Both the position numbers and the translations under genes were made by a program. A DNA stretch of 64,000 nt from Geosiphon pyriformis uo1 (Eukaryota; Fungi; Glomeromycota). How positions within the stretch are numbered: the stretch's first letter is position 1; the number at the start of each line of letters is the position of its first letter. Shown piece after piece: positions 11,366 to 56,821 of this stretch. Under the pieces are notes generated by a model. That model worked only from the letters and a program-made list of their open reading frames with translations, did not search any database and was not told where the DNA came from. The DNA is taken from NCBI GenBank assembly GCA_016748015.1, contig JAAOMT010000507.1, positions 42,178-106,177 of the forward strand, written 5' to 3'.

Positions 11366-11899
11366 AAAATAATCCCAAACTATTTATCTATTTTATAATT
11401 AATATTTATAAAAATAAAATAAAACAAAAATAATTGTATTTAAATGTTAATATTAAACAATATTACCAGAAGTAATTTAATAATAATAATAATATAAAAT
11501 AAAAATAACAATAATTTTAATAACTTTTAATAAAAAATGTTTAAACAAATAATAAAAGTTTAATAATAAATAATAAATTTATTTTTTAATTTTATTATAA
11601 TATGCTCAAAAAATATTTAAAAAACAGCTTAAAAAAAACAAAATAGAATTATTAAAGACATAATTTTTATTTAAAATATTAATATAATTATCTCTTTTAT
11701 TTTTTAAATAATAAATAAATACTATGTTTAAATTTTATTAATATTAAAAACCAATTAGCTTTATTTTTAATGAAAAAATAAAAAACTTTATAAAAAATAT
11801 TTTAAAATAATATTTAAAGTTTATAATTAATAATTAAACAAAAAAACCTATTAAAAAAATATTAAATTAATATTAAAACTTTATTAATTAGAAATACTT

Positions 11900-14010: not shown

Positions 14011-14299
14011 AATCAAGTTTAATATAAACTAAATTGTTTTAATTATGAATAATATTATAATAATAATAATAATTAATACATGTAATTAAAATATGATTCA
14101 TATTAAATTTTAAAATAATAATATTATTAAATATTAAAAAATATAATTTAATTATAATTTATATATTAAAAATTATAGAAAATAAGTACAACTTATATGT
14201 TTTTTATGTATAATAAATTATTTAAATTAATATTAAAGTTATATTATATTAAATATTACAAAAAAATTTAGCTTCTATTTTATTAATAATAAAGTTTAA

Positions 14300-16450
14300 A
14301 TTTATGTTATTTTTAATAAACTTATTAATTAAACTTTAGTTTTTTATTATATTATATATTTTGAATCTAAATTTTTTACAAAAACTACAAATAAATCAAT
14401 AAATTATTTAATTTATTCATAAAATTATCAAGATTTTAACCAAATTCTTGATTTAAATACTTACAAAGAATCAATTTTGCTTTATTATAAATTAAGTTAA
14501 TTTTAATAATTTAAAATTTTAAGTATTTAATTCAAACTTAAGATTAATATTAATTGCATACAATACAAAAAAAATAACAGTTTTAACATAAGATTTTATA
14601 TTAAATAATTAATTTATAGAAATATTAAAAGACACAAAATTTTTTAATATAACAAAAGCTTAGCAATTTAGAAATTTTTTATCAAAATAACATTTTTACA
14701 GAATATAAATTTTAATAATAGCAATATTAAGAGCTTTCTTAAACTTAAAAATAATAGTAACAAATTTTAAAATTAAGTAATCAAATAATAAAACCAACTT
14801 GGTTTTAAAAAAGTTATAAAAAACTAAAGCTGATTGTGAATTCATATTAATTTGACAAATATATTGTTGTTATTATTATTAAATACAAAAAAAAACTGCT
14901 TTTTACAGTCAAAATAGAAACAAACACTATAATTGATACATAAATAACAGAATTTGTAAAATAATTTTTAGTTTAAGTTTTTTTAAACAACAAATTAAAA
15001 TCAATTTTAATATTTTTATTATTATTATAAAAAATCTTAAGATTTTTAATAATACGTTTTTTTTAATTAAATACAGATTAACAATTAGTTATATAATTTT
15101 AATATTATTATTTGATTTGAAAAATTAATTGAAAATATAAAAACCAAAGCAGTTTCTTTAAAATATTATTGATTTTTGGTAATATTTATTAAATTTTTTT
15201 TGGGTAAATAGTTTTTATTTAATATTTAGCATAAAATTGGTCATTAAAACCAATAATAAAATTAACTAAATTTTATTTTAATTTTTTTTTAAAATTGCGA
15301 AATCTGTTATAGCTTTCAGTTCTATTTCTGTTTTTGTTGTTATATTTCAAAACTACTATTAAAATATTTAATAAAGTTGTTAATATTAAGCTAAAATATA
15401 ATAATATTATTTTTAAGTTTTAGAAAACTCTTAATATTACTATCAAAACTAAAATTTTAAAAAATAGCTGTGTTTAATAATAAATTTTTGAATATTGATA
15501 TTATTACAAATATTAAAAGTTTGAATTATCTGGTTTTAATTTGTAAAATCACTTTTTTTGGTTTAAGTAAAAATATTATTAAACAGTTTCCAATAAAAAA
15601 AAATTATTACAACTTATTTTGTTGGTTCTATTTTTTATGTTTAGACAATTTTTTAGTCCACTGTGTCTTATTTTGTTACAACTAAATTTAATATAAAAAC
15701 CAAAAAAAATTTATTTGAATTATTTGTGTTTTCTAATAAGTTTGTTCCAAAACAAAGAATCAAATTTCAGAGTTTAAAAGCCAAAATCCCAGATTTAGAA
15801 AAAAGTATGACTTGTTTAAATAATAAATAATAAGATGTTATGTTTTATTAAAATAATAGTGAAATTCTAATAGAAACATATAAATTATTTGTTATTAGAT
15901 AACAAATTTAAAAGTAAAATATCTAATAATGTTTTTAATTAAATATTAACATTATGAAAATTCTAAAGTAAATCTGTTAAGAATAATAAATGTGTTAATA
16001 AAACTTAGATAAAAAAAATATTTGTAATAAAAAATATATAAATAAATACATTAAAAAAATAAAGCAGATAATTTGTTTGAAATACATGACGTAACATAAG
16101 TTTAAATAACTAGTTGTATATAAAAAGCATATAAGCCACATTTACACTTTTATAAACAATTTAAAACGATAAATGTATATTTAAAATATTTTAAATGACT
16201 TTATTGTAATGTTATCAAAATTTCTTTATTAAAATTTAAATTTTTGACTTATATAATTAATGTATTCAATAACGTGACAAATTTGTTTTGAATTACAAAA
16301 TTTTTTTTTACATTATAATTTCAATCATAATTATTATTTAAAAATAACAAGTTGAAATTAAAATTCCAACATTACTTTTTTTCTTAAAAGTGTTGTCAAA
16401 AAATATTTTCAAAGTTTTTTATCTTCAAAAATTTTACTTGAATTTTATTA
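14300..16450. repeat. Further decayed AT-rich retroelement fragments in both orientations
   Basis: Ultra-AT composition; a 39-bp segment at 14718-14756 recurs inverted at 15405-15443 (36/39 identical by eye). Confidence 0.5.
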
Positions 16451-18329
16451 AAGCTTAATTATCCTAGAAAAAAAATTAAACTTGTGAATAAAAATCACGT
16501 TTTTTTTATTTAATAATATTAAATCTTGATTTGGCAAATCTATATGGAGAAAATAAAGGTCATTTTATTATTACTTGTTAATATATGGTAAAAATTTTAT
16601 TATTATCAACGAAATTATTATTTTAATTCGAAAATATGAGATGTTCCCTTTTTTTGGATATTTAGAATGCTATTATTAAAATTTTAACCATGCCAAAGGA
16701 AAAATAATCTATAAATGGCAGATGAAATCACAATTGAACTTATTATGTGATTCGTTCCTAACACTCTTATAAAGTGTCTCACGACTTTTGAAGAGCAACA
16801 TTGGAAGCAATGAGTCATTGGCTAAAAAAGCAATGATCTTCCTGCATGATTTTATTAGATCTCACGTGAACTTCCCGATCATTATTGCCATCTGAGATAA
16901 TCATGATCTGTGATTCACAGATAATTTCTGGCTGACGTTAAGGGTGATAAACAATATTTTTTACGGTTGGTGTACAATTGAAAATTTACTTGTTATACTT
17001 TAATAAATATATCAAAGTCATTTTAAAATATATTTTAAGTCACTTTAAAAAAATATTCTAACAAAAACTCCGAGTATTCTTAAATAAAAGGCTTTATATT
17101 AGAACCAAGTGATACATGTATATAGTATTTAAAATTGGTTTTGGGTTTTAGATATTAAGGTAAAAACCAGTTTTAGTATTAAGGGATAGAAAACACTCTT
17201 ATATTATGAATGACAAAATCGAATGATCTTTTCCTTCACTATCTTTGTTTTTGATGTGCATACAATTGAGTTGTGGACTTCTCTTTAGAAATATAGGTTT
17301 CCTAACTGCCTATAAAGTTAATCAGGCTTATTAACGTTTAATTTTAATTAAATGTTTCAAATAATGGCTTCACAAAGCATTGTGAGATGATTTGGAACTC
17401 GAGGATTCAGAAAAAAGAAACTTCAATTGTTCATAGAAATTAATAAAGCCCAATTAAGTTTATCTTTTGTTTCGGAGGGTTTTGAAATTTCGGAGAGACC
17501 AAAAGACGTTTTTGTAAATAACTTTTTTGTAATTGGTTCTTGTCTGCATTGGGACGCAAAAATTTGAGATCAGACATTAGGCTCAGTATAGAAATATTCA
17601 ATGCATGGTACTCTTGGTTTTCAAGACAATAAATGAAGATTGTTCTTTGAGATTGTTTGAGAATGTTCTGAATTTTTTGATAAAGAGCCAAAGCTATCAC
17701 CTCATTGAAAAGAAGGAAACCAATCAGGGGTCTTTCATGTTTTTCCCAAAATAAGGTTTATTTTATTTTATGTTTATTATTTTATGACCCGCCCAATCCT
17801 TTTGGGTTTGACTGATAACTATAAAAAAAAATTTATTTGTATCATACTAATAATTATACACGCGTTTAAAGCAGCAGATCTGTGCAAAATAACAAGATTC
17901 AACAAGAAAAGACGCGTCCATTAAACCAAATCAAGTGTTTGTGAAAAAAATGAAAGATATCTTTATGTAATAATATTTATTATGCACTTTCTCCTTTATT
18001 CAAAGCCCAATCAAGTTTGAGATGAAAAATAGGTATTAAAATAATTGGCTCTAATAGAATTTTGAGAGTTACAGAATGGAGAATAGCGAGAAGGTGTGAT
18101 AAGGTTGACAAAGTAAAGAATCTGTTTGATTGAAGGAATAATTGGGAAAAATTTGTCATCATGAATTCATACATTATGCAAATTTCTACCACTCCGGGAA
18201 TCAAACAGGTTAATTATGACACAGGTTTGGACAGTAATTTACTGGTTTCAATACCCTGGTTTTGGGGCTTAATTTATATTATTTCATGTGAACAGAAAAA
18301 AATTTATAAGGTTCAGCACCGAGTATGTC

Positions 18330-18330
<1 letters not shown>

Positions 18331-18386
<56 letters not shown>

Positions 18387-18390
18387 GTAC

Positions 18391-18481
<91 letters not shown>

Positions 18482-18520
18482 TACTAATAATAATAATAAT
18501 AATAATAATAATAGTACTAA
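18331..18520. repeat. (AAT)n microsatellite with AGTACT/TACT interruptions
   Basis: Directly visible; explains the poly-N and poly-I ORFs in the track. Confidence 0.97.
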
Positions 18521-28312: not shown

Positions 28313-31300
28313 TTACTTTATTGCAAGTAAACCTCGTTTTATCCGTGGTTTCTCTTGACTATCGCTACTCATCACTGACCCCTTGTCAGAGAGTTGCTCT
28401 TCCAACAAATCATCTCCAAGTATTGGAAGTTCAAACTTGTTCTCTCGTACCACATTAGCATCTGAAAAGTTTGATGAAAATGAAGCAGTTTCGACAATTT
28501 GATCTGTTGATTCTAACAAAGTATTACTGCCACTATATATGGTGCTTAGTTGATCTTGAAGAGCAGATGAGGAAGTTAAGTTTGGATGTGGTGGTCTTCC
28601 ACGGCGTGTTTGAAGGAATTTCTCACGAACGAGTGCACCAGTATGGTATATAATTGTCTTAATAATATCTGAAATCATCCAATCGGGAATTAATATCACC
28701 ATACTTTATAAAATAAAACTACGTTATTGATTATGTGAATTACCTCTTTTCAAGTGTTCCAATAAATCTAGCCAGGACCATGTTTTATTTTGGTATATAA
28801 TTGTGGGCAATGTAAATACGAAATCATAAAGATCTTCGAGGTTTTTCTCTTTAGCGCCCTAATATAGAAGAACAATATATCAGAAGGAAAATGGGACAAG
28901 TAGAAATTGAAAAATAAAATTGAGAGATTGAAAAAATCTATCACCTGATAACTAATATTATGGGTGACCTCAGGAATATTGATGTATATAAATGTTTTAT
29001 TATTAGATGCACGGGTTTTCATTAATGTCAATTCATCTGACTCCTTAGAATTGATACTGTCACCAACTCCATTTCGGGATTTTTTGGTTGAAAGTGGAAC
29101 ATCATTGGCAGTTGAACTATTTGACGTTGCCATCAATAATCCTTCCTCTGTTACAGGTAAGATGTCTGATTCACTATAACAGGTACTCTCACCAAAAGAT
29201 GAATCATCACCGCTCATATCATTAATGGATGTAGTTTTGAAAACCTTTGAGCCGGCGTTATCTGTTCCCACTGAATCTCTGCGTGAAGATAAAGGATTTT
29301 TTTGGTTTATTATACTTTCATCCATTATTGTCGCATGTTCCTCCGAATTTATATCTTTTTGATCATCAATAATACTATCATGAAAGATGTCGAATGTTTT
29401 TGATTTTCTTTTTTGCGGGAAAATATAGGTCACAATATGTTTGCCGATTTCATATTGTATTTGTAACTTAAGTGGAAAAAACTTGACCTCAAAGTGTTCA
29501 ACAACTGCAATTCCTGCAACAGGTTCCATCTCTCTCCAATACAATCTCAACATTTTGTTACGACTAAAATCTACTACTTGTCGTCGATAATCAGTGATAT
29601 ACGGATATATTAATTCAGTGAAGACGGGTGACGGCATTTTGTTTAGAACCCTCAAGTGGTCAATTTCCAATATATTAACACTTGAATTATCTTCACGCGT
29701 CATCCAAACAAAATGTGCATTAGATAAACCCCATTCACAGAAAGAATTTTTATTATCAAGCAGCATAATCCAGATGACCTCATTTGCTGTTACGACTGTT
29801 TTCAAAGGAGTATTACTTTCAGCCTTTTGCTTCTTATTTTGTGTGGCTGTGATCGCTTCCATCAATATGTAAAGCTCTTCTTGTGAATTAAGCAATTCAG
29901 CTTTAACTGTCCATAGTTCTCTTAATCCCTCCTCTCGTAAATCTACGAAATTAGTTTGTAATTGACGACGAAATTCATCCATTTGACGGATTCTCTGTTG
30001 CAGGGAGGCCACCATTTCGGATGTGCCAGTGAGGTCATCCAAATCTGCAGCAAGAAGAATAGTTTCTAAGCGCTCCATACGCTCTGTTTTGGTGGGTTCG
30101 CGATACATAAACAAATCTGATACCATATCTACAAACACACAATATTGTGCCGAGGTGGCGGAGAACTTGAAGCTTGGAAAATTAATGTGCCACGAATCCA
30201 TTCGCCTATCAAATTTATCAGCCTCTGACTCATCCCATATAGTTTCAGTGGATTCCCTATCATCAGCGCAGCCCTTAATTCTTAGATGATTGAACTTATC
30301 GTATAGCAATGTAGCAGATGTACGCTCAACAATTCGTTGAAAGGGAAAAGAACTTTTCTCATCATAATTAAACAATGATTCAATAGGAACCCAGACGGGC
30401 CATTTTTCGTTTGCCTTTGCACCAAAATTATTAGCAGATAGCAGCTTTGAATCATCATTTTGAAAATCCCTTTTCCAAGTTAAAAATAGCTGAGTATTGT
30501 CCAATCCAAAAATTGTTCTGGTCTTGACAACCTCATTGGCGTCCCCTCTCAATCGATCTTCAATTATTGAAAAACATTTGAGCTGTGCTCTCTCTGTTGA
30601 CATTATAATGCTTGCTACAGGATTTTTGTCGCTTTGAAAATTGATCTGAGTATTGATAAGTTGAACAACATATTTCTTGCATAATGTATAGCCCTCAGGA
30701 ATGTCGCCAGATTGATGGGATTCTGTGTTTTGAGAATGATCATTATTTGTAGATATATTGTCTTCCGCCACAGGGACTTCATTCGGGACTACAAAGCTTG
30801 TATTCTTTTCCCCTACTAATTGACGTAATAATTCAGCAGCCATATGAGCATCGAACCCAGCAGGATCAAAATTTGGTGCCATGCTAGCTTGCGACTCGTT
30901 TGAAGGGGTTTTTTGGATCTTTTCGGTACTTTTTTGTAATTCACGTATGAATTTTACAGCATTCATTGACATATAGTATGTGAGGCCTTGTTGTTGTTCA
31001 ATTAGGTCCCAATATTTATAGATCAAATTGCGCAATGAGTTATTCCAAATCACTTGGGCGCTATGAATCAAAAAGCGATGATCGAAATGATAAAGCAAAT
31101 CGGCCCAGAATGGAGAGTTTGGGTTGTATCCGGACATGTCATCTTCACCAGAAAAACTAGCTTTATCGTCATTGTGGTCAAAATTTCCATTGGCGGTGTC
31201 TCTATGAATATGTTTAGCTTCTCGAACATCAGTTTGATCATTTGAATTTTTCTCAAGTTTCGCAATGTAACTTTGGATAAATCTTCGCTTTCCCGATAAA

Positions 31301-34300
31301 ACCTTGATTGCTTGTTGAATAACTCGAGACTTAAAGAAAAATTTAGGAATTAAGTTTATATGAAAAGTTTTATGAAAGGAAAATTTTGTAGAGCAAACAA
31401 ATTTTAACCTCATCTTTTATATCTTGGCTTTCAGAATAACCTAATTTCTCATCTGTATCTTTTAAATTATCGGTTTGTCTCGAAAATTCTCGTTCAATTT
31501 GATTCAAGCGTTTATTTAAAAGGTCGATCTGAGTATCACGTGTCCCTTATGATAATAGAGCAATCAATTTAAGGAAGATCTTAAGATTAGCTGTACCTCT
31601 CAATCCAAGATTTTTTACCTCTTACTTGGCCCATGATACACATATGGGCTTCTTGATCCATTCTTTTGTCCTCATCAGTGTCATCTTCAAGGACATGTTT
31701 ATAATACATCAGTTGAGGACACTGCATGAAAGGTAGAACTCTCATTTTTGGCTTCACGTTAGGTAAAATAGAATCGATCTCGACATAATCATCTTCATCA
31801 ATCCATTCCTCATCTTCTGGATTTAAAACAAAATCTTCATCTTTGCCCAGCTGATCAATCCTTATATTGTGTTCTGTTGGTTCATTAATTTCATTACAGG
31901 AATGATAAGTGGGCTCTTCGATATACCGCACAGCAATTCCGCGTACATCCAAATTTTTCAGATCCATTTCTGCTTCATGCAAGATCATCTCACGAACCTT
32001 TAATTCGTCCTGTTCAACTTGAATAAGTTTTTCTTGCACTTTTTGATGTATATCTATTTTGAACTGTTCTATTTTTCCTTTCAAACCAACAATCTGAGTA
32101 CGCCCGTCGTTCCAATCTTCAAAAGCATTTTCTTTGTAAAAATGACTTAAGAATAAAGGAGCTAAACAAATTTTGTATTTGAGGGTATGCAAAAATTTTG
32201 AAAGCTTGGGGGAAGGAGGTTCATTGGTAGGAAACAGCATTCCTTGGCGAATTGGTATAAACATAGCGTTGTCGAAAAGAGATATCCAAGCGAAAGCGTG
32301 TTCAATGGATTTGGGAGTAACTTGAATTGAATTATATGACCCAACGTGAGGTTGTTCATTATCATTATTGTTATTTATGGAACTGTCCCAATCAATCGGG
32401 CACACCATGCTGAACGATAGATGTACAATGTCTGACCGAAAACCTCGGAATGAATCATATATCTGTCAAAAGGGATTCAATTTTTAGATGATATTAATAA
32501 ACCATCATTCCGGCGATGAGAAACAAAAAATTAGGTAATATTTTACCTGCCCACCGGAAGCGGATGGATGCTCTGGCATTCTTGTAATCACTTCATAATG
32601 TGGTATAAAGTCACTAAAGCGACAACTACCCTCTCCATGACAGCGAGGACAAAGCGCATTCTCGTTAGAACAACTTCGATGGAATTGACATCCCATTCCA
32701 TACCTCACACCACCTCCGATTTTCATTAGTACTTTGACTAAACCATCATTAGATGCGGTACCCACAAGAGTATTTGATGAGCTTTGTGTTCTCATTGTGC
32801 TCGTCTCTATGTCTCGAACAATCGTATCCTGTGGAGATTTCTTTTCTTTGACGATAGTATTTTCAGCAGACAAATTCCCATTCGCAACCATTTCAACTAA
32901 ATTCGGGATAGCGAGTTTGAATTCTTCACTATCTACTTGTAAAAATTCCCCGGCGTTATTGGAATACCCCAGTCTAATTTTGACGCCATTTTTGAAACAT
33001 AAAGCAAACCCAGAACCAGGACCTGTAACCAAATAAGGATTTCTTGTTCCCTGTGATAAAAACCGCACATCACCACCACCTTTGAATTCCATTAATATTC
33101 GTATATGCATAATTAGGCGAAACTTATCCCAGAACCCTATTGGCTCTGAAAGGTCGGGATTTGGCTTTGTAAAACTTTCCACCACTCTAGCAATATCAAG
33201 TACCGCTGGCTGCATAGAAATGCTCCAAGAAAATACGGTAGTGTAAGTAGAGTTTATATCAATATAAAGATCAGAATAGAGTTTTACTGGAGAGCAAGTT
33301 CTAGGAACTATTATGTTGTAAGCCTGATTAGACGCATTATATTGAGGGGGAACAACAGTCATAACAGACTTTCGAACCGTTTCTAAACCACGAAGCTCCT
33401 CTGCAATTACAAGATCACCATTGAATATGGAAGAATATCTTTTTTTGGCTTCAAATTGTTCTATTGGTGGGATGTGAGCTAAAGGGGTTGGATAATCTCT
33501 GATCTGAACCCATGCCTCGTTTAATTTGCAATTCACATGCATTGGAACCAGAAGTGTGAATTTTGTATCTAATGGCAATCCTTTTCCAATTCTGTTCATA
33601 AATTCTGGGAGATTTTCCATCGGAAACGAAGGACATGAAAGGTTAATTAATACTCGATCCAAAGTGACTTTAAGCAAAGCAGGGGGTGATAATGAAGTCT
33701 GGGTTGTTTTGATGGGGAGATTATCTTCCTCATCCTTGGAAAAATGTTTGGTTTGATTCAATTTACAACGGAATACTTTGGCAGCCCTAATTCGTTTTAT
33801 CCAATTTCCTGAGTTATATTCATCAAGGGCAATACGTGCTGCATCTATGCTGACTTTGGCTCGAGGAGAGGGTAGGGAACCCGTTGATGTGAATTTTAAC
33901 TTTGGGGAAGATCCAATTGCTCCCTCATTTACCACATGAGACAAATGTACACCAGAATTCATGGAGTCACTCGTTGATTTTTGGGCCTGGTCAGCCTCGA
34001 TGCTTTCAACTTTTGCTTTAAAAGCAGCTTCTCTGTCTAATCTTGCTCGTTGTTCTATACCTCCAACTTGCCATATAAGCCCCAATTGACCTTCAAATGG
34101 GTCATCTTCCAGTCGAAATGTTAAAATGCCTATATCAAGTCGCAAAGTTGGCAAATGAATGGGGCCTTCTTCTTCTGGCTCAAGAGACGTTGTTTCAACT
34201 TTAAATATTAGCCTTTTCTGAATATTCTTAAGAGATTTAACTAAATCGGCCAAGCCATCAAAGACATCAGCAAAAATATAGTTATGAGGAACACGTATAT

Positions 34301-37300
34301 GGGCTGCTTCAGACTGAAATCCGATAACCATTTCGGTATTTTTCTTGACATTTTTATCCCCGAAATCATCCGAAATCAGAAGGTGGCTATCCATGATATT
34401 AATCAGTTGATCCCATAATCCACAATCAGCTGGATTAGTTCCGAAAACTCGAATCCTCTTGATACTACAGCTATTTTCAGGCCTTGGCATTAAGAATGTG
34501 TGTTTCAAGCCATCGATTCTTGCATAGAGTTCAAGGTTTTCGGAAAGATTAACAAAAATGTTAAAAACGTTTATAACTGAGGTAATTTTAAGTTTGATTG
34601 TCGCTCGTGAGGTTTTTTCAGGAAATAGAAGTTCATTGGAATGTGAAAAAGAACTATCTGGCTTGATGCAAAAGTTGGGCGCTAGTTGGATCAGGTTCAT
34701 GATGGCGACCAGAATACAATAATGGTAAAATAATGAGTATATAATCGTGAGCTCTTCGAAACTTAGTGTCGCTTCCAAAAAAAGTTCGTTTTTTGAATGA
34801 TCAACATCGAGTTTGCATTTGCCTTCAATTTTTTTTATGCTGATCAATGGTCTAGTCTTTCTTAATAGATCTAAATCCCATAGAGCTAAAATTGGAATCA
34901 ATTTAAATCCTCTCAAGACGCCTCGTATTTTACCACCAACGTTATCGCCCGACTCAAAAGGATCATCATTAGCAGAAAGCCCAAGACCGACTCTTTCCTG
35001 ATAAGACACAATTGGATCAACGCAAGCTCTGACGCCACGGTAATCTAAAACGATCGCTTCCAAACGAGCTTCAAAACCACGGGAAACCGATGGATCTATC
35101 AAACAATCTATTTCTGCTACCTTAATCTCAACCGAGTTCAAAGAAAAATGAAATTGCAAAGTTTCGGGGATCCAAGGCGTTTCAATGCCTGGGGTGAATA
35201 AGTTTGATGATGGATCGACATATGTTTCCGACCTTACAATATTATTTCCACCATCCTCGAATTCGCTTTCTTCTTTAACTTTCTGGATAATTTTTTCCAG
35301 CAAAAAAAAATTATTTTTATTGCATAATCGAACCTGAAACCCGTCAATAAGACAGCTGAGGCTGATCTGAAACGTTTCTTTTTCTATTACAGGATTCATT
35401 TCAAGAAAGGTGCCAAGTGCAGATGAAATGATATTTAGCTCGCAGGAATGATTGACTAACAAATCATTTTCCAGTGTATATAAACGCAGGTTTCGAGATT
35501 TCAAACTTGCAACAAGATTATAAATCAAGGAAAATGCAGGAGGCGTCCAACCCTTTACATAGCGTCGCGACAAGGTGCGCTCATGTTGTGTAGATGTGAG
35601 ATTATCTAATTCCCTATAATCCCCATTCAGATTGAGAAGAATATCTTGGAATCCGAAAGCAATTTGTGAATCACTACATCCCATTGATTTATTCTCTTGG
35701 AATGGGATTCCAGTTATTTTAAAATTGGGACGTAGAATTGCTACATTAAGAACTGCTTTTGGTATATTTTGAAGTTGTTCTTGGAAATATGTAGAAATTA
35801 GGGATGGCGAAGCTGAGGGTATTTTGGAAGGTGGCTTAAGCTTGACACTGATTTCTTCAGAAGCCTTTAGAGTTTTTATTATCCTGTGAAAGGAGTCAAT
35901 ATGAGTGTAGTCAATAATCACTTCTGGAATGCTAATTTCTAAATCGCCAATCACTGAAAAAGAATTGGGGTCTTCATCATCTTTAATATTATCAAGAGGC
36001 GTCGTAATTTGCAAATGATGTATGATTTTGTCAATTTCCATCAAGCGAGTTTTGCCCTTGGTGTCAGCTAAATCCGAATAAACACTGGCTATTTCAAAAT
36101 CAAAATCGAACGATCCCACCTTGGATTCCTCAATAAATGAAATTGATTTTCGAAAACAATCAGAAATCAATTTATCATTTCCGAAATCTTTTCTTCTGAG
36201 AGATGTAGAGAAATCGGTAACGTTTAAATCAACTCCGATGGGGATGTTTGTTTCCTCTTCTAGACATAAACGTTCATATTGTAAGTGTACCTGCCCAATG
36301 GATAATGATATGTAACTGAGAAATTCAATAGGCGTCCTTTTTCGACGCTGAGGAAGTATTTTACGACCAATTGGTGTATCTAACAATGATGCCATTGTAA
36401 ATGAACGTGAATGCGAAATCGCTGGACGTCGAGATAAAGGCTTAATGACAGCTTCAGCATGGTTTTTTGGAAATGCAACCTTGATAGCGTTGCTTATACG
36501 TAATATTCCATCAAGTCCCACAATAATTTTTTGGAATAATAAATTGAATTCAAGAGCGATGATGGAGGTACATGCGGGTGAAAGATCACATGACAGGTTG
36601 ATAGTTGATGGATAAGGAAAGACAATAGCTGGAGATAATTTTAGAAACTTTTGTTGATCGGATTTTTGATTTGAAGAAAGAGATTCAATATCGATAATTG
36701 ATAGCGAAGAGTAGTTCAAACTAAGATTGAGTACTTTATTTGAGAATACATGGCGAGTATTTTTGATGGAATGATGTTCTTGAGTGAGATGATCCCGAGA
36801 AGGTTGATGATACTGGGCACAATTTTTATTCGTGGTATTTTCAACTTGTGCGAATAAATTTGAATCTAAAGAAACATCTTCAATGCTAAATTGACCTAAA
36901 TCGTCTATTAAAATCTCCAAATTGGTAATGTGAAGAGATATATAATTTGTAATTGCAGATAAAAAGAATTGAAATGGAATCGCGGATATTTTAGCAACAG
37001 CAAACTTCAGCACCCAAACCGAGGACCACCATGCCTTTTGAGGAACTACAGAGATTAAACTTGGTTGACGAGCGTGAGATCGCTTTCGGGGAGGAGATTG
37101 GAATAGTTTTAGGGAAGAGATATTTAGTTTGGCATCCTTGATTATCAAGGTAACCCATGCTCTTTTCCCCAGGTGTGGTTTGGATAAATGAAAGTGAAAC
37201 TTTTGAACGGTGATACGATATGTATATTCATGGGTGCCGACCAATCGAATTCCGAAATGTTTAAGATCCGAAAGTGAGAAAAGCCCTATGGAGCCAATTC

Positions 37301-37418
37301 GAACTTGAAACTTTTTATCCAAAAGACGTAAGAGGAACTGAAGGCTATAATAGAGTACAAGAAAAAGAAAAAGAAGGAGGAAAACTTCGAAAATAGTCAT
37401 TTGGGATAGAGATTTCAT
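28313..37418 (-). CDS. FMP27: FMP27/Hobbit (BLTP2/KIAA0100) bridge-like lipid transfer protein, ~2902 aa, 6 exons
   Basis: Exons 37418-32547, 32462-31619, 31545-31409, 31329-28945, 28858-28744, 28668-28313 (GT-AG, total 8709 nt, divisible by 3). N-terminal TM anchor; EDDPFE, IRDYPTP, IGFWDKFRL, YDSFRGFRSD, WPVWVP and Apt1-like C-terminal motifs (GIAVVEHFEV, MKTRAS, NKTWSWLDL). Confidence 0.93.
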
Positions 37419-39879: not shown

Positions 39880-42140
39880 AAAAAATTATTTTAATTATGT
39901 AGTAAATTTCAAAGAAATAATATACATAAAGCACATATTTTAAAATCAGCTGATTAAAATTTGTTTAAATTTTAATCATGTTAAAATAAAAAAAACCAAC
40001 AAAATTAAAAATATTGAAAATTGAAAATATTAATTGATGTTGATTATATATACTTATTAATAAATTATTATTATTATTATTTATGTTATATTAATTACCT
40101 AGTTTATTTTTGAAATTAATTACTAACTTGATTAATAATTTAATTATTGATTTTTTATTAAATATATAAATATAATCTTTTAAAGCTACAAAAAGTCATT
40201 ATATTTTAAAAATAAAAAATAAATATACAAATATATATAAATAATTGTGTTTATATAAATTGAAATTGTTATCTTATAATAAATAAGCTTTATATTAATT
40301 GTAATTAATTGTGTTTATTTTATTGAATTATGTTTATAATAAATAAACATTATGTTAAATACGACTTCATTAAAATATTATTTTTAATTAAATTAAAATT
40401 ATAACAGTTATATTATTTTTGTTAACAATTATAAATCTATTTTTTGTGTTTTTAAATTTTTTTGTTATGTTAAAATTTATATTTAAAATTAATTTTATTA
40501 ATTAGATAATTTACATTTTTATTTTTTATTTTAACTTTTGTTATTTATTAACTTTAACTTATAGCATAAAAACAATTTTTTTTAAAATTGTTAAAAATTA
40601 TTATTAATTATTTTACAATTATATTATAATAAAATATTGCGAAATTTTTAAGATAAATTTACAATTTCACTTTTGGTTTTTTTATATTTGTAAAATTTTT
40701 ATATTTTTGAGTTAAAAAACCAATTATTAAATACTTTATTTGTAAAAAATAATAAATAAACCATAAAAATTGTTAGATTTTTTTAATTATTAAAATTAAC
40801 AAATTGCTGTAATAATAATAAAAATCAATTTTATGTTAATATATAAAACTTAATAAAATAATTAAAATTTTAAAATTGCAATTATAACAAATTAATACAA
40901 TAATAAAAATTGCAAATTATAAATAATTAAAAAAAATACTTTTAAGATTTTTTTAACTATATAACTTTTTTTAACATTTTTTTATTTCTTAATTTTATAA
41001 ATCTTATGTTTACAATTAAACCATTTTTTGTTAATATAATTATAAATAAATATAAATTTAAAGTAATTTTTATTTCTTTTAAAAGCATTTTCTAACTGTA
41101 AGTTTTTAATATTGTTATAATTATTAAGTCTTTTAACAATACAAATTACTGTTTTTTTGATTTTAAAAAAACAATACTTATTTTTTTATAATATTTTTTT
41201 TATAATGTTTTTTCTTATTACTACTTAAATAATTAAAAAAAACAAAACAACAAAAAAATAATTTCTTTATTTTTAAAACCTATTTTTTAAAAAAATAGTG
41301 AATTGGTTTTTTTAGTTTTTAATGCTTTTACCAGTTTTATAGTATCAATATAATTATGTACTTAATTTTGTTTTAGTTATAAACAATAATAATAATAATA
41401 TAATTATGAATTTGGTTTATATAATAAATTTTTATTTATAACTAATTTTAAAAAAACACAAATTATATATATATTTATAAAAATTGAGCTAATAAAATAA
41501 AATTTAAAAGTTTTTACTTTAAACATATTATTAATATTTTTATTTGAATATTTAATATTATATTAAAATTAAAATAATTTATATTTAGACTGTGTTTATA
41601 TTTTTATTAATAAATTTATGTTAAACTGACTTGTTTTTGTTATTTTATACTAAATACAGTAAAGTTAAACATGTATTTACTAAATATAATTTATATAAAA
41701 AACTTTTTAATATTATTAAAAAATATGTAAATATAATTGATAAATAATAATAATAATTAATATATATATATACAAAAAACAGATTTTTATTGTCTATTAT
41801 ATTATTTTTAATAATAAAACTTAAACTTAAATTGTAAATAGTGTTTTTATTAATTTTTTATTTGTTTTTTTTTTAAATATTAGTTTATTAATAAATAATA
41901 AATTTTTTTAATTTATTTTTGAATTTAAAATTTAATATGTTAATATGTAATTTAAAGTTTCTTTTTTTTCTATTTTTTTTAATGAAATTTTTTATTTTTA
42001 AGTTCTATTGTATTTAGCTTTATAATTATAAAATTAAATGGTTTAAAAAAGCTTTTAAAATCTTTTAATATTGTTTTTTATGACTAAATAGTTTAAATTT
42101 TAATAATAATTTTTTAGATTTTTTTTTAATAACTATCTTT
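39880..42140. repeat. Ultra-AT decayed repeat block (may include the ORF1 region of the adjacent LINE)
   Basis: Extreme AT content; its left part (40126-40195) resembles 7067-7220. Confidence 0.55.
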
Positions 42141-42149
42141 TTAATATTA

Positions 42150-45100
42150 CATATAGTAATATTTTAAATAAAACTAAACAATTTTGCAAAGCAAAAAATA
42201 TTTTAAATTACTATAAAAATATAAATAATTTGATATTTATTATTATTAAGACTAAATTAAAAAATTATATTAAGTTTTAGATTGGAAATAAGTTTAATAA
42301 TATAAAAATATTTACTTTTGATTTGAATTTTGATTATTTAAATTTTGATATTACAATTATAATAAATAATAGTTTAATCTAATATATGTATAAAATTTCT
42401 AGAATTGTAATTTATTTCTTGTTAATTAAATTGCTGTTTAAAAATAAGCTTTTTGTTTTAATTTTAAAATTTTATACTAATATTTTTGTAAAAATACATA
42501 TAATTCAAACTGATAATATTAAATTTTTAATAGCTAAAACTGTAAATAAGAATTTTTTATAGTTTAATTAGTAATTTCAATAAAAAAAGCTTTAAAAAAT
42601 GTGCTAACTTTAAGAAATATTTGGATATTGGCATGATTAACTCTTTAATAAACAATTTAACAATTAAAACTACAACTTAAAAAAATTTAAAGAAAATAAA
42701 AAAGACTATTAATTATATTTTTGCTTCTGTAAATTTTGTTAATATTATAATTAATTATAAGATATTAAGTATAAAATTTTTTTTAATATTAATTACCAAG
42801 CTGTTTTATTTTAGTAAATTTAGATGGTTTTTTAAACATATAATTGATCATTTTATAAAGATAGATAAGCAAAACTGGTAAAAATACAATTAATAAAATA
42901 CAAATATTGTTAAATAAATTCATTTTAAAAATCTTTTTTTATTAATGGCAGTTAATTTAGATAAAAATTTTAATGATTTTAGAAAAAACATAAATTTAGA
43001 TATAATCTGAAATTTTATTTGTAATATAGTGTATTAATTAGCTAATAAATTATTTGTAAAGATTTGGTCTTATAATTTCGATAATATTATGATCAAAAAA
43101 TTATCTAAATTATTTAAGTTAAAACTTATGATTTTAAAATCATTTACATTAATAAATTTGTAATTGTATTTTAAAAATATTAAGATTATAATTATTTAGA
43201 ATTTAGTGAATATAAAATATAAAATTATAAATATTAGATTTGTTTTATTTCAAGCAAAAAGATCTTATTATGTATTTAAGTTTTATAAATTTAAATTGTT
43301 ATAAAATCAAAAATTTGGTCATTTAATTTTAAGCATATAAATAGTTTTGTTGAACACAATATTCGATTTGTAACTTTATCAATATTCTTTTTTGGCATAT
43401 ATTAATAATAATATTTTTTTTAATATAAAAAAAAATTAGATATAATAAATTGCTTGGGGTAATTAAAGATATACCAAATAAAAAGACCGCTAATTTGTTT
43501 AGAATTACAAATAAACTTTGAAAATATTGTAATAAGTTTGTTTTAAAACTATTTTTAAATTTATTAAATTTGTGTTTATTGTGTAAATTAGTTTTTATGT
43601 TTTAGAAAAAAGTCTGAACGTTTATAATCCTAATAAATACTAGACCTATTGTTTTAATTGAAACTACTAGAAAAATTTTTTTTCTAACAAAATATCTTTT
43701 GTTTATAAAAAATTTAATATGCTTTGTAGTAATAATTTTTTGGTTTTAAAAGATACATTTATTTAATTTTCTATCTTTACAGTAAGCATAATAATTAATA
43801 CTATCTTAAAAAAGAATAAAAAACTGTGGTTAGTTTTTTGAAACATGTATAAAACTTCTGATTCTGTAAAATCTTATTATTTAAGATATAGTTTAATTAA
43901 AATTAAAATGTATAAAAATTTATTAGATTCTTTAATAGCAAGTATAATAATAAAGTCGATTAAATAATAACATATTTTGGTTTAATTAATAATTATATTA
44001 TGTATAATAGTCTTAATTAAAATAAAATTTTCTCTTTACTGCTTTGAAAAATATTTTATAATCTTATTTTGTATAAGATAAAAAAGCATAAAAGTTTATT
44101 ACTAAATCTGACAGAATTAAGATTAAAACTGGTCTGGCTTTTTATTTAACTATTAGTATTTTTATTAATAACGTAATTTAAATCAAAAATAATCAAACTA
44201 CAAATCAATGTATTTTAAATATAGTAAGCAAATTTTATAAAATCAATAACACTTTAATTAATAATAATAAAACTGTAGTTATTTTTATTAACTAAAAAAT
44301 CAAAAATATTTCTTTATTAATTAATAATTTGCCAATTTTTATTGCAAAAAAAAAGAAAGTTATACAGATATTTGGGCATTTTTTTTATAAAAAGCTTATT
44401 TAAGTTTAGTTTAACTAAAATATATTTGAATATTAAATTTTTTGTAAAAAAAAGTTATCATAAATAAACAGTTTTTTTATTTGATTTTAATAATTTTATA
44501 TTTTATTATAAGCTATAAAACTTAATTTAGGTTTGTATTAAAAAGTATATATAATAAATAGAATGTTATAATTATAAAAAAACTAAAAATTAAGACTAAT
44601 TTATCAAAAATTTATCTATTATTGTATAACTTAAAGTCTTTTAACTAAATTTAAACTGAATACAAAATGGTTACTATTATGGTAAATTTGGTAATATTTT
44701 TAGTATATTTTTTAATTATTGTGTTTTGAATTTGCAAATCTTGATTTAGATGCTATACAGTTTACTTATGTTTTTTATTAGACTGTTAATTGCTTTTATT
44801 AATAATTTTCTGGTTAATATAAAATTTTTCTGGGTTGTAATATATTTTTTTCTAATAATTTCATAAATGTTTTTTATTTTGTGAATAAAGCTTCTATTTT
44901 AGATATATTGGGCTATTTAACCTATTTTAAAATAATTTATTTTCTTGAAAAATTCAACATAGCTTTTGCAAATCAGCTTTTAAGTAGATATAATTACTGC
45001 TTTAATTAAAAAAAAAATTATTATTGGAAGAGACTTAATCTAAAAAAATTCGTTTCTTCATATTTTAATACTATGGTGAATTTTATTGAGATAAGTAGCC

Positions 45101-45720
45101 TAGTTAGCAAAAAATTGTTTTTGTTATTTTATAAGAATTTGTTTAAATTATAGCATTTTAATATAATCTAAAATAGTTTAAAAGACATTTCTTTAGATAA
45201 AATATTTGTTTAAACAAATGATTTCATTAAAAATTTTGGCTTATTAGATATCGTTAAAGAAGTAACTACATATTTTCTGATTTAAACATCAATATTAGTG
45301 TAAGTATTTATAGTTTATATTATCAAATTTGGCTGAATTACAAGCTATTGTTTTATTATTTAAATGTGTGCTGGTTTTTAGTATGGTGGTTGTTTATTTG
45401 AATCATCAAATAATTCTAAATACTTGTAAAATAAATTAAGTTTGGTTTGTTTTAATCTTTATAATTGAAGTTGAATTAAAAAAAGACACATTTACAATAT
45501 TATTTATAATAAAAATTAAGTATAAGATAAGTCAAAATTAAGAATTATTTAGGTAATATAAGAAATAATTGTGTTAACTTATTTGCTAATAATGGTATAA
45601 ATTTGAATTTCATGTTGTTAATCAATGTTAAGAAAAAATTTTTTATGGTTGATGACAATAAAATTTTTATTCAACTTTTTAAAAAGGCAATCAGAAAATT
45701 CATTTAAATTCAATCTTTGT
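42150..45720 (+). mobile_element. Hypermutated LINE ORF2 relic: APE endonuclease, reverse transcriptase, RNase H
   Basis: Manual translation: IKTKLK (=TETKL), LLFKNKL, SNFN (=GDFN, ~42570), TT*KN..KKTINYIF (=PTW..TIDYIF), NINYQAV (=DTDHxAV); NTRPIVLIETTRK (~43637), LWLVF*NMYKTSDSV (=LQDMxKAYDSV), SLN*NKIFSLLL*KIF (=GLDQGxxxSPLLW), FINN at 44161-44172 (=FVDD); V*TND (=YTDG) and LAELQAI (~45330). Confidence 0.85.
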
Positions 45721-47240
45721 TAATTATATTTTTATTTTATTGGTTTTATTCCTTGTTTTTAAATAAATACTTAAAGAGCTAAATTTGAAAAACTAGCATG
45801 TATCTCTTTAATAAGAGGAATTACGTATAACCCTAAAACATTCGATTACATGTGAATGATCGTGATGGAGTTTACCAAACATGAAAATATTTATTGTCAA
45901 ATATTTATTCTACTCTGTTAGTCTCACAAATTTTAAATAGCATTTGGTATTGCATATAAATTTTTTAAAAGCGCAATGTAATATTTGATACTTTCTAAAA
46001 TTCTTAAAAACCATAAAAAGATTAAATAAAATTTTCTTTATAAAGTTTTTTTGCCATTTTTTAGAAAAATAATGTTATTTTATGTGAGTCAAAGATTTAA
46101 TTGTGTTTTCAAGAAATTAATATTACAATTAGATAAATAAATGATAATTTATTCAAAATCATATTTAATTTCTACCAATAAAAACTACTAATATTATAAA
46201 GTTTCAAATTATATTAAAATAACAGCATAATTTAATTTAATAGTTTATAATAACTAATTTCATATATTGGTTATTTTTAATATTAAAAACTAGATGATAA
46301 AAATACGATAAACATTGTTTAAAAAATAACTTTTATGTGTCGGCCTTTTGAAATTTGGAAACGCGATAAATTTTGATTATGGTGTTGCTTCTAATCGCTT
46401 CGCCCAAGAATTAAGCCTGATTATCTCTGTTCAAAATTGATTCGACTTAGTTTAATTGATTTTTATTAAGATTATTTATGTTTCAAAAATAATTCATGAA
46501 ATTAGGATGAAGCCAGTCAAAAAATGAATCATTGCTAAACATTTTTTAGAAAAATTATTCAATCGATTGGAAAGCCTATAAAAGTGCAATTTTATGATTT
46601 TTTTCCCAGTGTTAAGTTTTTATAAAATTTATAGAATCGGTGGCTTATTTTTTTAAAAATATCATGTGAAAAACCGAATTCAAAAAAAAGCCAAATAAAT
46701 AAAACACGGTTTTTTTGTACTGAATTAAAAATATATAGTTTTTATTTAAATGAAAACTAAAATCTTCTTCTCAATTTATTGTTGTAAACCCATTAGCTTT
46801 GTATCATAATAGTATCTAATTATAAGATGCTCAAATTTTGATGAGATTAATATGTATATATTTAAATAAGTTCTTTAAAAGTGAAATTTCTTGAGTGAAA
46901 ACTTTTGATTAGATTTTCTCTGCTTTCTAAAATTTTCAAAAACTAAATATTAATTTTAATAATAAAAATAAAATATATATATTACAAATTGTGTCTTCTA
47001 CTTTTTTTAAAGATATTTAACTGTTAATTAAGCTTTTTTACAAACTTTGTAACTACAAATAACAAAGTATTTTGGACAACTAAATAATTTTTTATGTTTG
47101 AAAAACAATTCACTACTTAAAACTGAAAAAAATTTATAAAAAAGGCATAAATAAGTTCTTTCATAAAATAATGTCTATTTCTGTAACCAATTTATAACCC
47201 TATTGATATTGAAACCGTACTTGTGACCTTAATCCACATC

Positions 47241-54690: not shown

Positions 54691-55326
54691 AAATAATAGG
54701 CAATCCTTATTATTGATGTATTATGATCAATCTGTTAATAAATAATTAATAGAGCACCATCTCAGAAAATAATATCAATTTGAAATGTCAAATATTGTAA
54801 TAATTATTTTTAGAAAACGAGAGAAGGCAATTTTCGTTTTTAAAAAATTTATTCAATATTGGTTAGTTTAGATATTTTTGGTAAAAACGCTAAAAGGTGG
54901 CTTTTAGGGTTCGTTTGTGAAAAAGAAAATATCGTAATTTGACTGGAAATCTTATCAAAGCCGCATTAAAAAAGTAGCATAGAAAGACAAAAACCTAACA
55001 CTTAATTGATTGTTCAGCTTTTCGTAATCCGTGTATTTTCCAAAAATAGAAAATTAAACTATTAGAAAATAGGTGTAACTTTATTTAGACATGTATTTTC
55101 TCCATTGACAGGAATTACACAGCCTCATTTCAGGTATTCTAGTTGGACTGATACATTGTGGCTGAGGAATCCAAAAACAAATTAATTCAAAACTCCTTAC
55201 AATTAATTTTTTTCATTTCTTATTGATAAACAAAAATGGCAGCGCATTATTACATGCTCTCATAGATTCGTGAACAATACGTTAAAATCAAAAAATAGAA
55301 AAATCGTTCAGTTGGCTTTCATGAGA

Positions 55327-55361
55327 CTCTCATAGAGACTCTCATAGAGTCTCTATGAGAG
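55327..55361. promoter_or_regulatory. Perfect 16-bp inverted repeat (3-nt loop) upstream of the polyprotein gene
   Basis: CTCTCATAGAGACTCT-cat-AGAGTCTCTATGAGAG; an extra CTCTCATAGA copy at 55257-55266. The structure is certain; the regulatory role is inferred. Confidence 0.55.
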
Positions 55362-55427
55362 ATCAAGAGACAAACAAAAGAGAGGAAATTTTTTTTGGAA
55401 ACAGCGTGACTTTGCCGAGGAAAAAAA

Positions 55428-55437
55428 TATATAAAAA
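55428..55437 (+). promoter_or_regulatory. Putative TATA box of the polyprotein gene
   Basis: TATATAAAAA about 180 bp upstream of ATG 55610, which has a CAAAAATG context. Confidence 0.5.
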
Positions 55438-55609
55438 GATGGGGAGGGCTTCAGAAAAGATCATTGCTCCAAATCTCAAGTCTTCTATCCAAAAAATTTA
55501 GCAAATTTGATCTTATCAAATTGTTTCCACAATTCAAAGAAAAAATCCATTTTAAAAGCTTCCAATTTTTGATCCCAACTTCTATATTTTTATAATTTTA
55601 TTTTCAAAA

Positions 55610-56821
55610 ATGGCACCAAAATTCATCGCTTTATCTGCTTTGGCATATGCCACTCTTATTTCTTTTGTTCTTTCTGCTAATGCTGATCGAAATGTCAACG
55701 ATAAACGTGGTAGTGGAAATGGTAACAATAATGGCAACGGAAACAATGGTTCATTCAATGGTAACGGTAATGGAAACAACAATCAGGGATCATTAAATGG
55801 CAACAATAATGGCAATGGAAACAATGGTTCATTCAATGGTAACGGTAATGGAAATAACAATTTGGGTTGGTTTAATGGAAATGCTAACGGAAATTTCAAC
55901 GATGGTTCATTCAATGGTAACGGTAATGGAAACAATAATTGGGGTTGGTTCAATGGAAATTCCAATGGAAATTTCAACCATAAACGTAGTAACGGAAATG
56001 GTAACAATAATGGCAACGGAAACAATGGTTCATTCAATGGCAACGGTAATGGAAACAACAATCAGGGATCATTAAATGGCAACAATAATGGCAATGGAAA
56101 CAACGGTTCATTCAATGGTAACGCTAATGGAAACAACAACCAGGGTTGGTTTAACGGAAATGCCAACGGAAATTTCAATGGTGGTTCATTCAATGGTAAC
56201 GGTAATGGAAACAACAATTTGGGTTGGTTCAATGGAAATTCCAATGGAAATTTCAACCATAAACGTAGTAGCGGAAATGGTAACAATAATGGCAACGGAA
56301 ACAATGGTTCATTCAATGGCAACGGTAATGGAAACAACAATCAGGGATCATTAAATGGCAACAATAATGGCAATGGAAACAACGGTTCATTCAATGGTAA
56401 CGCTAATGGAAACAACAACCAGGGTTGGTTTAACGGAAATGCCAACGGAAATTTCAATGGTGGTTCATTCAATGGTAACGGTAATGGAAACAACAATTTG
56501 GGTTGGTTCAATGGAAATTCCAATGGAAATTTCAACCATAAACGTAGTAGCGGAAATGGTAACAATAATGGCAACGGAAACAATGGTTCATTCAATGGCA
56601 ACGGTAATGGAAACAACAACCAGGGATCATTAAATGGCAACAATAATGGAAATGGAAACAATGGTTCATTCAATGGTAACGGTAATGGAAACAACAACCA
56701 GGGTTGGTTTAACGGAAATGCCAACGGAAATTTCAACGATGGTTCATTCAATGGTAACGGTAATGGAAACAACAATTGGGGTTGGTTCAATGGAAATTCC
56801 AATGGAAATTTCAACCACTAA
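55610..56821 (+). CDS. Secreted Kex2-processed repeat protein (KEP): signal peptide + four 91-aa Asn/Gly-rich peptides separated by KR
   Basis: Signal MAPKFIALSALAYATLISFVLSA, short pro-segment ending DKR; KR codons at 55703, 55982, 56261, 56540 (279-bp period); last unit ends exactly at the stop; intact 403-aa frame with synonymous variation between units. Confidence 0.88.
   Translation: MAPKFIALSALAYATLISFVLSANADRNVNDKRGSGNGNNNGNGNNGSFNGNGNGNNNQGSLNGNNNGNGNNGSFNGNGNGNNNLGWFNGNANGNFNDGSFNGNGNGNNNWGWFNGNSNGNFNHKRSNGNGNNNGNGNNGSFNGNGNGNNNQGSLNGNNNGNGNNGSFNGNANGNNNQGWFNGNANGNFNGGSFNGNGNGNNNLGWFNGNSNGNFNHKRSSGNGNNNGNGNNGSFNGNGNGNNNQGSLNGNNNGNGNNGSFNGNANGNNNQGWFNGNANGNFNGGSFNGNGNGNNNLGWFNGNSNGNFNHKRSSGNGNNNGNGNNGSFNGNGNGNNNQGSLNGNNNGNGNNGSFNGNGNGNNNQGWFNGNANGNFNDGSFNGNGNGNNNWGWFNGNSNGNFNH
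55709..56818 (+). repeat. Hierarchical coding tandem repeat: 4 x 279 bp, each 7 x 39 bp + 6 bp
   Basis: 13-aa unit G-[SW]-[FL]-N-G-N-x-N-G-N-x-N-x, 28 copies (the first of each seven is variant). Confidence 0.97.

Follow-up and report, generated by a model that had tools for sequence, protein, structure and literature searches.

A putative Kex2-processed polyprotein of Asn/Gly-rich 13-residue repeats in the fungus Geosiphon pyriformis

The Kex2-processed repeat proteins (KEPs) of fungi have been defined as a group that includes pheromones and effectors, and the amyloid-forming Rep1 repellents were cited in the same study (Le Marquer et al. 2019, PMC6339444). Gly/Asn-rich (GN-rich) secreted proteins have been reported as intrinsically disordered proteins (IDPs) from Ambispora leptoticha and Paraglomus brasilianum (Schultz et al. 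2022, PMC8786786). That paper also covers the GN-rich proteins RIC1-3 of Geosiphon, which carry KR sites (GenBank MH580277-MH580279; Hoffrichter 2018 thesis) and were recovered as cDNAs from an expression library of this fungus; it reads the KR motifs as possible Kex2 sites and infers an amyloid tendency from composition. Repeats of the G-x-N type are furthermore known from N-terminal extensions of class II hydrophobins, such as Trichoderma QID3 and Passalora HCf-6, and from the spacers of multipartite hydrophobins in Claviceps (Kubicek et al. 2008, PMC2253510). Here, we analyzed a 403-codon open reading frame (ORF) on the + strand at positions 55610-56821 of a 64,000-nucleotide (nt) stretch of the Geosiphon pyriformis genome (contig JAAOMT010000507.1, positions 42,178 to 106,177; hereafter "the window").

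The reading that we favor, with a probability of roughly 0.6, is that this ORF encodes a kexin-cut precursor of four 9-kDa peptides, which would probably be Asn-ladder solenoids with aromatic ends and would serve as extracellular structural or surface-active material.

A predicted precursor of four in-register repeat units

The ORF is uninterrupted over all 403 codons, and its translation bears out most of what an earlier note on this DNA had read from the letters: a signal peptide, then four units of 91 amino acids (aa) split by KR, in an intact frame (Table 1). As that note had also stated, each unit consists of exactly seven 13-residue repeats (13-mers) with aromatic residues in fixed register. 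All 28 of the 13-mers are in phase, with N4, G5, N6, N8, G9, N10, and N12 invariant, F at position 3 in 20/28, W at position 2 in 8/28, and F at position 11 in 8/28. The units are built only from N, G, F, S, W, Q, L, A, H, and D. The noted lack of Cys, Pro, Lys, Arg, and Glu, the pair of N-G-S sequons in each unit (at residues 13 and 39), and the restriction of Trp to the last three turns (13-mers 5-7) likewise agree with the translation, and Lys and Arg occur in the repeat region only as KR dipeptides at the unit borders. The mature part comprises 169 Asn and 105 Gly among 370 residues. Asn-Gly dipeptides number 21-22 per unit and 85 in total, and the computed isoelectric points (pI) of the peptides range from 5.1 to 6.5; unit 1, for example, has a mass of ~9.1 kDa, a pI of 5.1, and 21 Asn-Gly dipeptides. 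Unit 4 has no hydrophobic C-terminal tail and thus no glycosylphosphatidylinositol anchor signal.

On the DNA level, the array has a period of 279 nt with 4.0 copies and 96% matches (Tandem Repeats Finder score 2083), and units 2 and 3 differ by a single nucleotide. One statement of the earlier note did not hold, namely that neighboring repeats are heavily decayed: the window contains no decayed copy, and the tandem repeats nearby are short and AT-rich. An apparent second copy at 18317-18484, the sole other tblastn match in the window, was rejected as an (AAT)n microsatellite.

The coding status of the ORF needed testing because the other frames and the opposite strand are likewise open across the repeat. 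This openness is compatible with a minisatellite-made frame that only looks coding, as is the failure to find an exact match for this ORF and nine of its paralogues in a collection of 15 billion proteins. The sole public run with matching contigs is of unrecorded type and kept as contigs. Two of these are identical to 56032-56340, a gene-specific stretch that reaches 100% identity only inside this gene, and the run reaches neither the flanks nor the 5' coding end. We nevertheless consider a non-coding origin extremely improbable. The ratio of nonsynonymous to synonymous substitution rates (dN/dS) in this frame, calculated over the first 97 codons against the paralogues L004 and L005 (contigs C771 and C773), was 0.18 and 0.15, respectively. 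The codons of the invariant Asn and Gly residues are mixed (AAT 97, AAC 75; GGT 46, GGA 45, GGC 14), at least 25 paralogues have the same protein-level architecture, and the ATG with its signal peptide is common to paralogues, the signal peptides of L004 and L005 matching that of the gene except for one substitution. About 550 nt upstream of the ATG (55056-55609), including a conserved TATA box, are shared with L004 and L005 at ~85% identity (80% over 500 nt for L004 alone); the 3' flank does not align with the paralogues. By these sequence-based measures, the ORF is a protein-coding gene under purifying selection and a new, unannotated member of its family. Its N-terminal 48 residues had no relative among the public proteins searched.

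A family of putatively secreted paralogues with dibasic sites

The protein matches 55 places within the G. pyriformis genome. Thirty-two loci were extracted and yielded 26 different intact G/N-rich ORFs, almost all of which begin with a signal peptide. Judged by sequence, the gene belongs to an expanded secreted Gly/Asn-rich ("RIC" or GN-rich) family of 25 or more intact paralogues, members of which are clustered at 377-423 kb of contig C773, 222-308 kb of C580, and 130-289 kb of C701.

Dibasic sites recur in this family. In 20/25 ORFs a [KR]R site, typically within E-K-R or D-K-R, ends at residues 26-47, right before the first 13-mer. Internal KR-bounded units are present in 10 ORFs and vary in size (91 aa here, 65 in L004 and L005, 66 in L031, 77-78 in L012, and 30 in L025); in the subfamily of the gene studied here, the unit lengths (91 and 65) are exact multiples of 13, not counting the KR. 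L025 (1499-2971, G000:C773) has 19 dibasic sites and would yield 30-aa peptides of two 13-mers ending in R-D-G-W-W-W; DPQEYKR or DPLLYKR spacers, similar to those of yeast alpha-factor precursors, lie among them. Spacer peptides of the alpha-factor type also occur in L022. An aromatic residue lies within the last six positions of 40 of the 45 KR-bounded units, compared with 9% aromatic residues elsewhere, a count that is inflated because units within one gene are near-identical and thus non-independent. Uninterrupted arrays reach 50 consecutive in-register 13-mers (L016, 934 aa). The genome also encodes a kexin-type protease, with Peptidase_S8 (subtilase) and P_proprotein exons on G000:C608.

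At L022 we also observed a 496-aa ORF with ten KR sites and its own start codon and signal peptide (L022:2522-4012; G000:C580, ~252.7-254.2 kb). The GenBank model G9A89_006378 (697 aa, P0004) fuses an F-box-like N-terminal part to this ORF and looks like a chimeric gene model.

Because dibasic pro-sites, KR-bounded units, and a kexin gene occur together, Kex2-type processing appears to be a conserved design of the family. The proposal of a secreted Kex2 polyprotein is thus well supported at the sequence level by the signal peptide, the KR at the unit borders, the pro-sites of the paralogues, and the protease gene. According to the proposed pathway, the precursor would enter the endoplasmic reticulum (ER), and the two N-G-S sites of each unit may be N-glycosylated. 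In the late Golgi, kexin would cut after each KR, which would then be trimmed, probably by a carboxypeptidase, and four near-identical uncharged 9-kDa peptides would be released outside the cell. Each peptide would comprise seven turns of the 13-residue repeat, every turn consisting of three G-N-x-N quartets plus one residue. The peptides would most likely fold into narrow beta-solenoids that carry Asn ladders, with the aromatics concentrated in the last three turns, and their likeliest role would be that of a structural or surface-active material of the cell wall or extracellular matrix rather than of a diffusible signal.

Alternatively, the protein could be secreted but remain uncut, as a disordered, glycosylated, and very hydrophilic wall or matrix protein of 37 kDa in which the KR dipeptides are incidental. 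The low confidence of the AlphaFold models (see below) and the long arrays of L002, L003, L009, and L016, which have no internal KR, would fit such a protein. Moreover, GN regions serve as spacers in multipartite hydrophobins (PMC2253510), and similar proteins were classed as IDPs in PMC8786786. We nonetheless regard an uncut product as unlikely, since Lys and Arg are confined to KR placed precisely at the unit borders, since this KR is added atop whole multiples of 13 residues, and since units of other sizes that are bounded by KR reappear in 10 paralogues, two of which (L022 and L025) have alpha-factor-type spacers. Most of the long arrays, too, retain the dibasic pro-site.

Distribution and predicted fold of the 13-residue repeat

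The family consensus, based on 408 13-mers, reads G1 (88%), S2, x3, N4 (100%), G5 (100%), N6 (70%), x7, N8 (96%), G9 (100%), N10 (96%), x11, N12 (99%), with position 13 mostly hydrophobic. The pattern can be divided into three G-[N/S]-x-N quartets and a single additional residue; positions 3, 7, and 11 are variable. A register kept so strictly across hundreds of copies speaks for a defined, repetitive structure and against a mere bias in composition.

The protein had no sequence match in Pfam, NCBIfam, or PDB. The only PDB row, a low-complexity match to an insert of pyridoxal kinase, was discarded, and a feature search of the ESM Atlas gave scores of 0.77-0.78, below the useful level. When a profile of the unit was run against 1.84 billion representatives, no more than 105 protein clusters matched. 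The same 13-mer, mostly just after a signal peptide, occurs in hypothetical proteins annotated for Geosiphon (KAG9291474, KAG9292667, and KAG9289063) and Ambispora, and in several groups outside the Glomeromycotina. Homology was shown to the annotated GN-rich proteins P0004, P0023, P0077, P0092, and P0003 of Geosiphon and Ambispora. A Microdochium protein with the UniRef name hydrophobin, which no Pfam hydrophobin model matches, contains eight or nine 13-mers. In plants (P0013, P0016, and P0131) the repeat stands directly behind the signal peptide of Root_cap-domain proteins, and in green algae (Coccomyxa or similar; P0010, P0011, P0015, and P0130) it also directly follows the signal peptide. 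Bacterial proteins (Mesorhizobium, Rhodopila, and Flavobacteriales; P0001 and P0006) carry it near the N-terminus, and one metagenomic bacterial protein showed a near-threshold match to the VPLPA-CTERM sorting signal (23.5 bits versus a cut-off of 25.35). This cross-kingdom occurrence points, on sequence grounds, to either a shared extracellular module or repeated convergence.

The earlier note had also suggested that each unit may fold as a seven-turn beta-solenoid, which might polymerize as a hyphal coat, an adhesin, or an ice- or water-ordering surface. AlphaFold2 predicted one unit (26-row alignment) with a mean predicted local distance difference test score (pLDDT) of 46.3 and a predicted template modeling score of 0.36, with beta-bridges every 13 residues. 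The 370-residue mature protein (24-row alignment) had a mean pLDDT of 47.7; unit 4 was predicted best (pLDDT 57-69), with one five-residue and one two-residue strand per 13-mer. When this model was compared with 48,161 chains by VIA-align, all matches were beta-solenoids (Z 7.6-10.4). Among these were TibA (Z 10.4, root-mean-square deviation (rmsd) 2.8 over 155 residues) and bactofilin (Z 7.6, rmsd 2.3 over 81 residues) as well as Ag43, the ice-binding proteins of Marinomonas and Lolium, an RTX block, and pectate-lyase-like folds. The solenoid proposal is therefore weakly supported: the strict register and the exclusive alignment with beta-helical proteins speak for it, and the pLDDT of 46-48 overall and 57-69 at best against it. 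We also considered a beta-hairpin meander of eleven-residue strands with G-S turns, which would likewise put all Asn on one face, but the AlphaFold model favors the solenoid. A four-copy complex prediction of one unit scored 0.00, with the fold of the unit itself being uncertain, and thus weighs on neither side of the question of self-assembly.

Two further roles have been weighed for such peptides, both of them very unlikely in our view. Ice-binding or water-ordering solenoids would be in line with a repeat in which every second residue between positions 4 and 12, both included, is Asn and with the alignment of the model to the ice-binding solenoids of Lolium and Marinomonas, which were, however, two among many matches; the rmsd of the Lolium match is 8.4, and matches of this kind are without exception generic solenoids. 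Glycine-rich antimicrobial peptides are known to arise from polyprotein precursors in plants, but the peptides described here are neutral to acidic, unlike most antimicrobial peptides. No contextual hint for either role was found.

Several observations weigh against the favored reading as a whole. The pLDDT values are low, and both middle units are unstructured in the model. Z-scores near 8-10 are commonplace for repeat models, and neither model matched any PDB entry in a Foldseek search. Asn-Gly dipeptides deamidate fast unless they are held in a structure, so that the 85 deamidation-prone dipeptides, together with N-glycosylation, could block ordered assembly. The described relatives are regarded as intrinsically disordered (PMC8786786). 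The aromatic-tail count is inflated as described above, the genome searches in which no hydrophobin domain was detected had no positive control, and the public run that matches the gene is of unrecorded type and covers neither the flanks nor the signal-peptide region. Finally, cleavage at the KR sites is something that we infer from the sequence.

To our knowledge, Geosiphon is the only fungus that houses cyanobacteria inside its cells; it is sister to the arbuscular mycorrhizal fungi. The great expansion of the family in this very fungus could indicate that the peptides are symbiosis signals or effectors, and this idea gains from the origin of the RIC cDNAs in a Geosiphon expression library (PMC8786786) and from the KEPs that elsewhere in fungi yield pheromones and effectors (PMC6339444). 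Known KEP signals are, however, much shorter than these low-complexity repeats of 91 residues and carry more information. In addition, GN-rich relatives exist in the plant-hosted Ambispora and Paraglomus (P0003; PMC8786786), and the same 13-mer is found in free-living bacteria, algae, and plants. A signaling role thus appears quite unlikely. With regard to structural material, the genes for secreted Asn/Gly repeat peptides in Geosiphon number in the dozens, and most of them are absent from public annotation; their products are obvious candidates for what the wall or the symbiotic interface is made of.

A bolder proposal, which we put forward as possible but doubtful, is that the 13-mer is an unrecognized extracellular beta-solenoid module of bacteria, green algae, plants, and fungi, and that Geosiphon, seemingly without hydrophobins, uses Kex2-released, aromatic-tipped peptides as a self-assembling coat of its surface or symbiotic interface. 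If the repeat were a solenoid and not disordered, the present classification of these proteins as IDPs would need revision, and a repeat module would be defined from bacteria to plants. The gain from the single gene is smaller, as it adds one more member to the family, whose unit, unusual in its length and regularity, would lend itself to structural work.

Genomic setting and comparison with described systems

The features of the locus are compiled in Table 1. The palindromic element occurs at the equivalent position upstream of L004 and L005, overlaps a 12-nt tandem repeat (55319-55354), and could be a transcription-factor site. A scan for bacterial promoters and terminators was set aside because the gene is fungal.

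Table 1 Features of the repeat gene and its upstream region, with positions in the window
Feature	Position	Strand	Remarks
Palindromic element	55331..55362	+	arms CTCTCATAGAG / CTCTATGAGAG; ~250-280 nt before the ATG
TATA-like box	55428..55435	+	TATATAAA; 182 nt before the ATG; octamer at -180 to -182 in L001, L004, and L005
Signal peptide	55610..55684	+	25 aa; n-region MAPK, hydrophobic core, c-region S-A-N-A; read from the translation
Propeptide	55685..55708	+	DRNVNDKR, 8 residues; last two residues are the first dibasic (Kex2-type) site
Unit 1	55709..55981	+	91 aa, seven 13-mers; followed by KR at 55982-55987
Unit 2	55988..56260	+	91 aa; followed by KR at 56261-56266
Unit 3	56267..56539	+	91 aa; followed by KR at 56540-56545
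Unit 4 and stop codon	56546..56821	+	91 aa; C-terminal ...GNFNH

The assembly (G000) comprises 128.3 Mb in 792 contigs and is matched at 99% by the GenBank protein G9A89_006378 of G. pyriformis. The gene is solitary on its contig (C370), within an AT-rich stretch, and the other genes of the window are of ordinary eukaryotic kinds. The G+C content of the window is 27% and falls to just 10-18% at 12001-16000 and 40001-46000. On the minus strand, ORFs of 881, 273, and 1637 aa at 28768-37418 match successive parts of Hobbit/FMP27, a member of the bridge-like lipid-transfer protein family, and constitute one large three-exon gene with introns. The same strand carries an HMG-box ORF of 352 aa at 214-1272 and a zinc-knuckle (gag-like) ORF at 9211-11378, which is followed by more short ORFs and is probably part of a retroelement remnant.

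Among described systems, the small-coil beta-solenoids (TibA/Ag43, bactofilin, and ice-binding proteins) share with the predicted model a regular short coil and stacked Asn. They have no sequence relation to the Geosiphon protein, whose 13-residue coil would consist of Gly and Asn only, with almost no hydrophobic core; the likeness is a resemblance of a low-confidence prediction and not membership. The GN regions of hydrophobins, which are surface proteins that fungi secrete, and the present gene have a repeat of the G-x-N type in common. This protein differs in having no Cys, no eight-cysteine domain, and no Pfam match, and in that the repeat makes up the entire product.

A close likeness exists to the RIC and GN-rich proteins, which come from the same organism or order and whose genes were also missed by genome annotation (PMC8786786). 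As is described for GN-rich proteins in that paper, the product of the gene has an ER signal, a high content of Gly and Asn, and a KR di-motif, and it originates from the Glomeromycotina. Its 403 aa compare with 456 aa in RIC2 and 470 aa in RIC3; the RICs are likened here by description only, and no entry named RIC was among the matches in protein searches with this gene. None of the following appears in the parts of PMC8786786 consulted: the 13-residue register, the 3x(G-N-x-N)+1 pattern, the seven-turn units, and the interpretation as a solenoid. The earlier note did not recognize a named family, and this has to be corrected, as RIC1-3, the Ambispora and Paraglomus proteins (PMC8786786), and the GN repeats of hydrophobins (PMC2253510) have all been described. 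The family is already named in the literature, though uncharacterized.

The gene resembles the KEPs in its signal peptide and its near-identical units between KR sites, which here share 96% DNA identity. It differs from them in that its units are internally repetitive, in that no STE13-type dipeptides follow the KR, and in having no sequence similarity to described KEPs. No sequence relation to Rep1 or to curli subunits was found in Pfam, NCBIfam, PDB, or the homologue lists. Units of 91 residues are also well above the usual size of KEP peptides, those of Rep1 having roughly 35-55 residues. Since the genome apparently lacks hydrophobin domains, and in view of how the precursor is built and of the aromatic tails, we liken the peptides to the repellents and to the GN regions of hydrophobins, and the Rep1 peptides of Ustilago maydis, which remain on the hyphal surface as amyloid-like fibrils, may serve as the working analogy.

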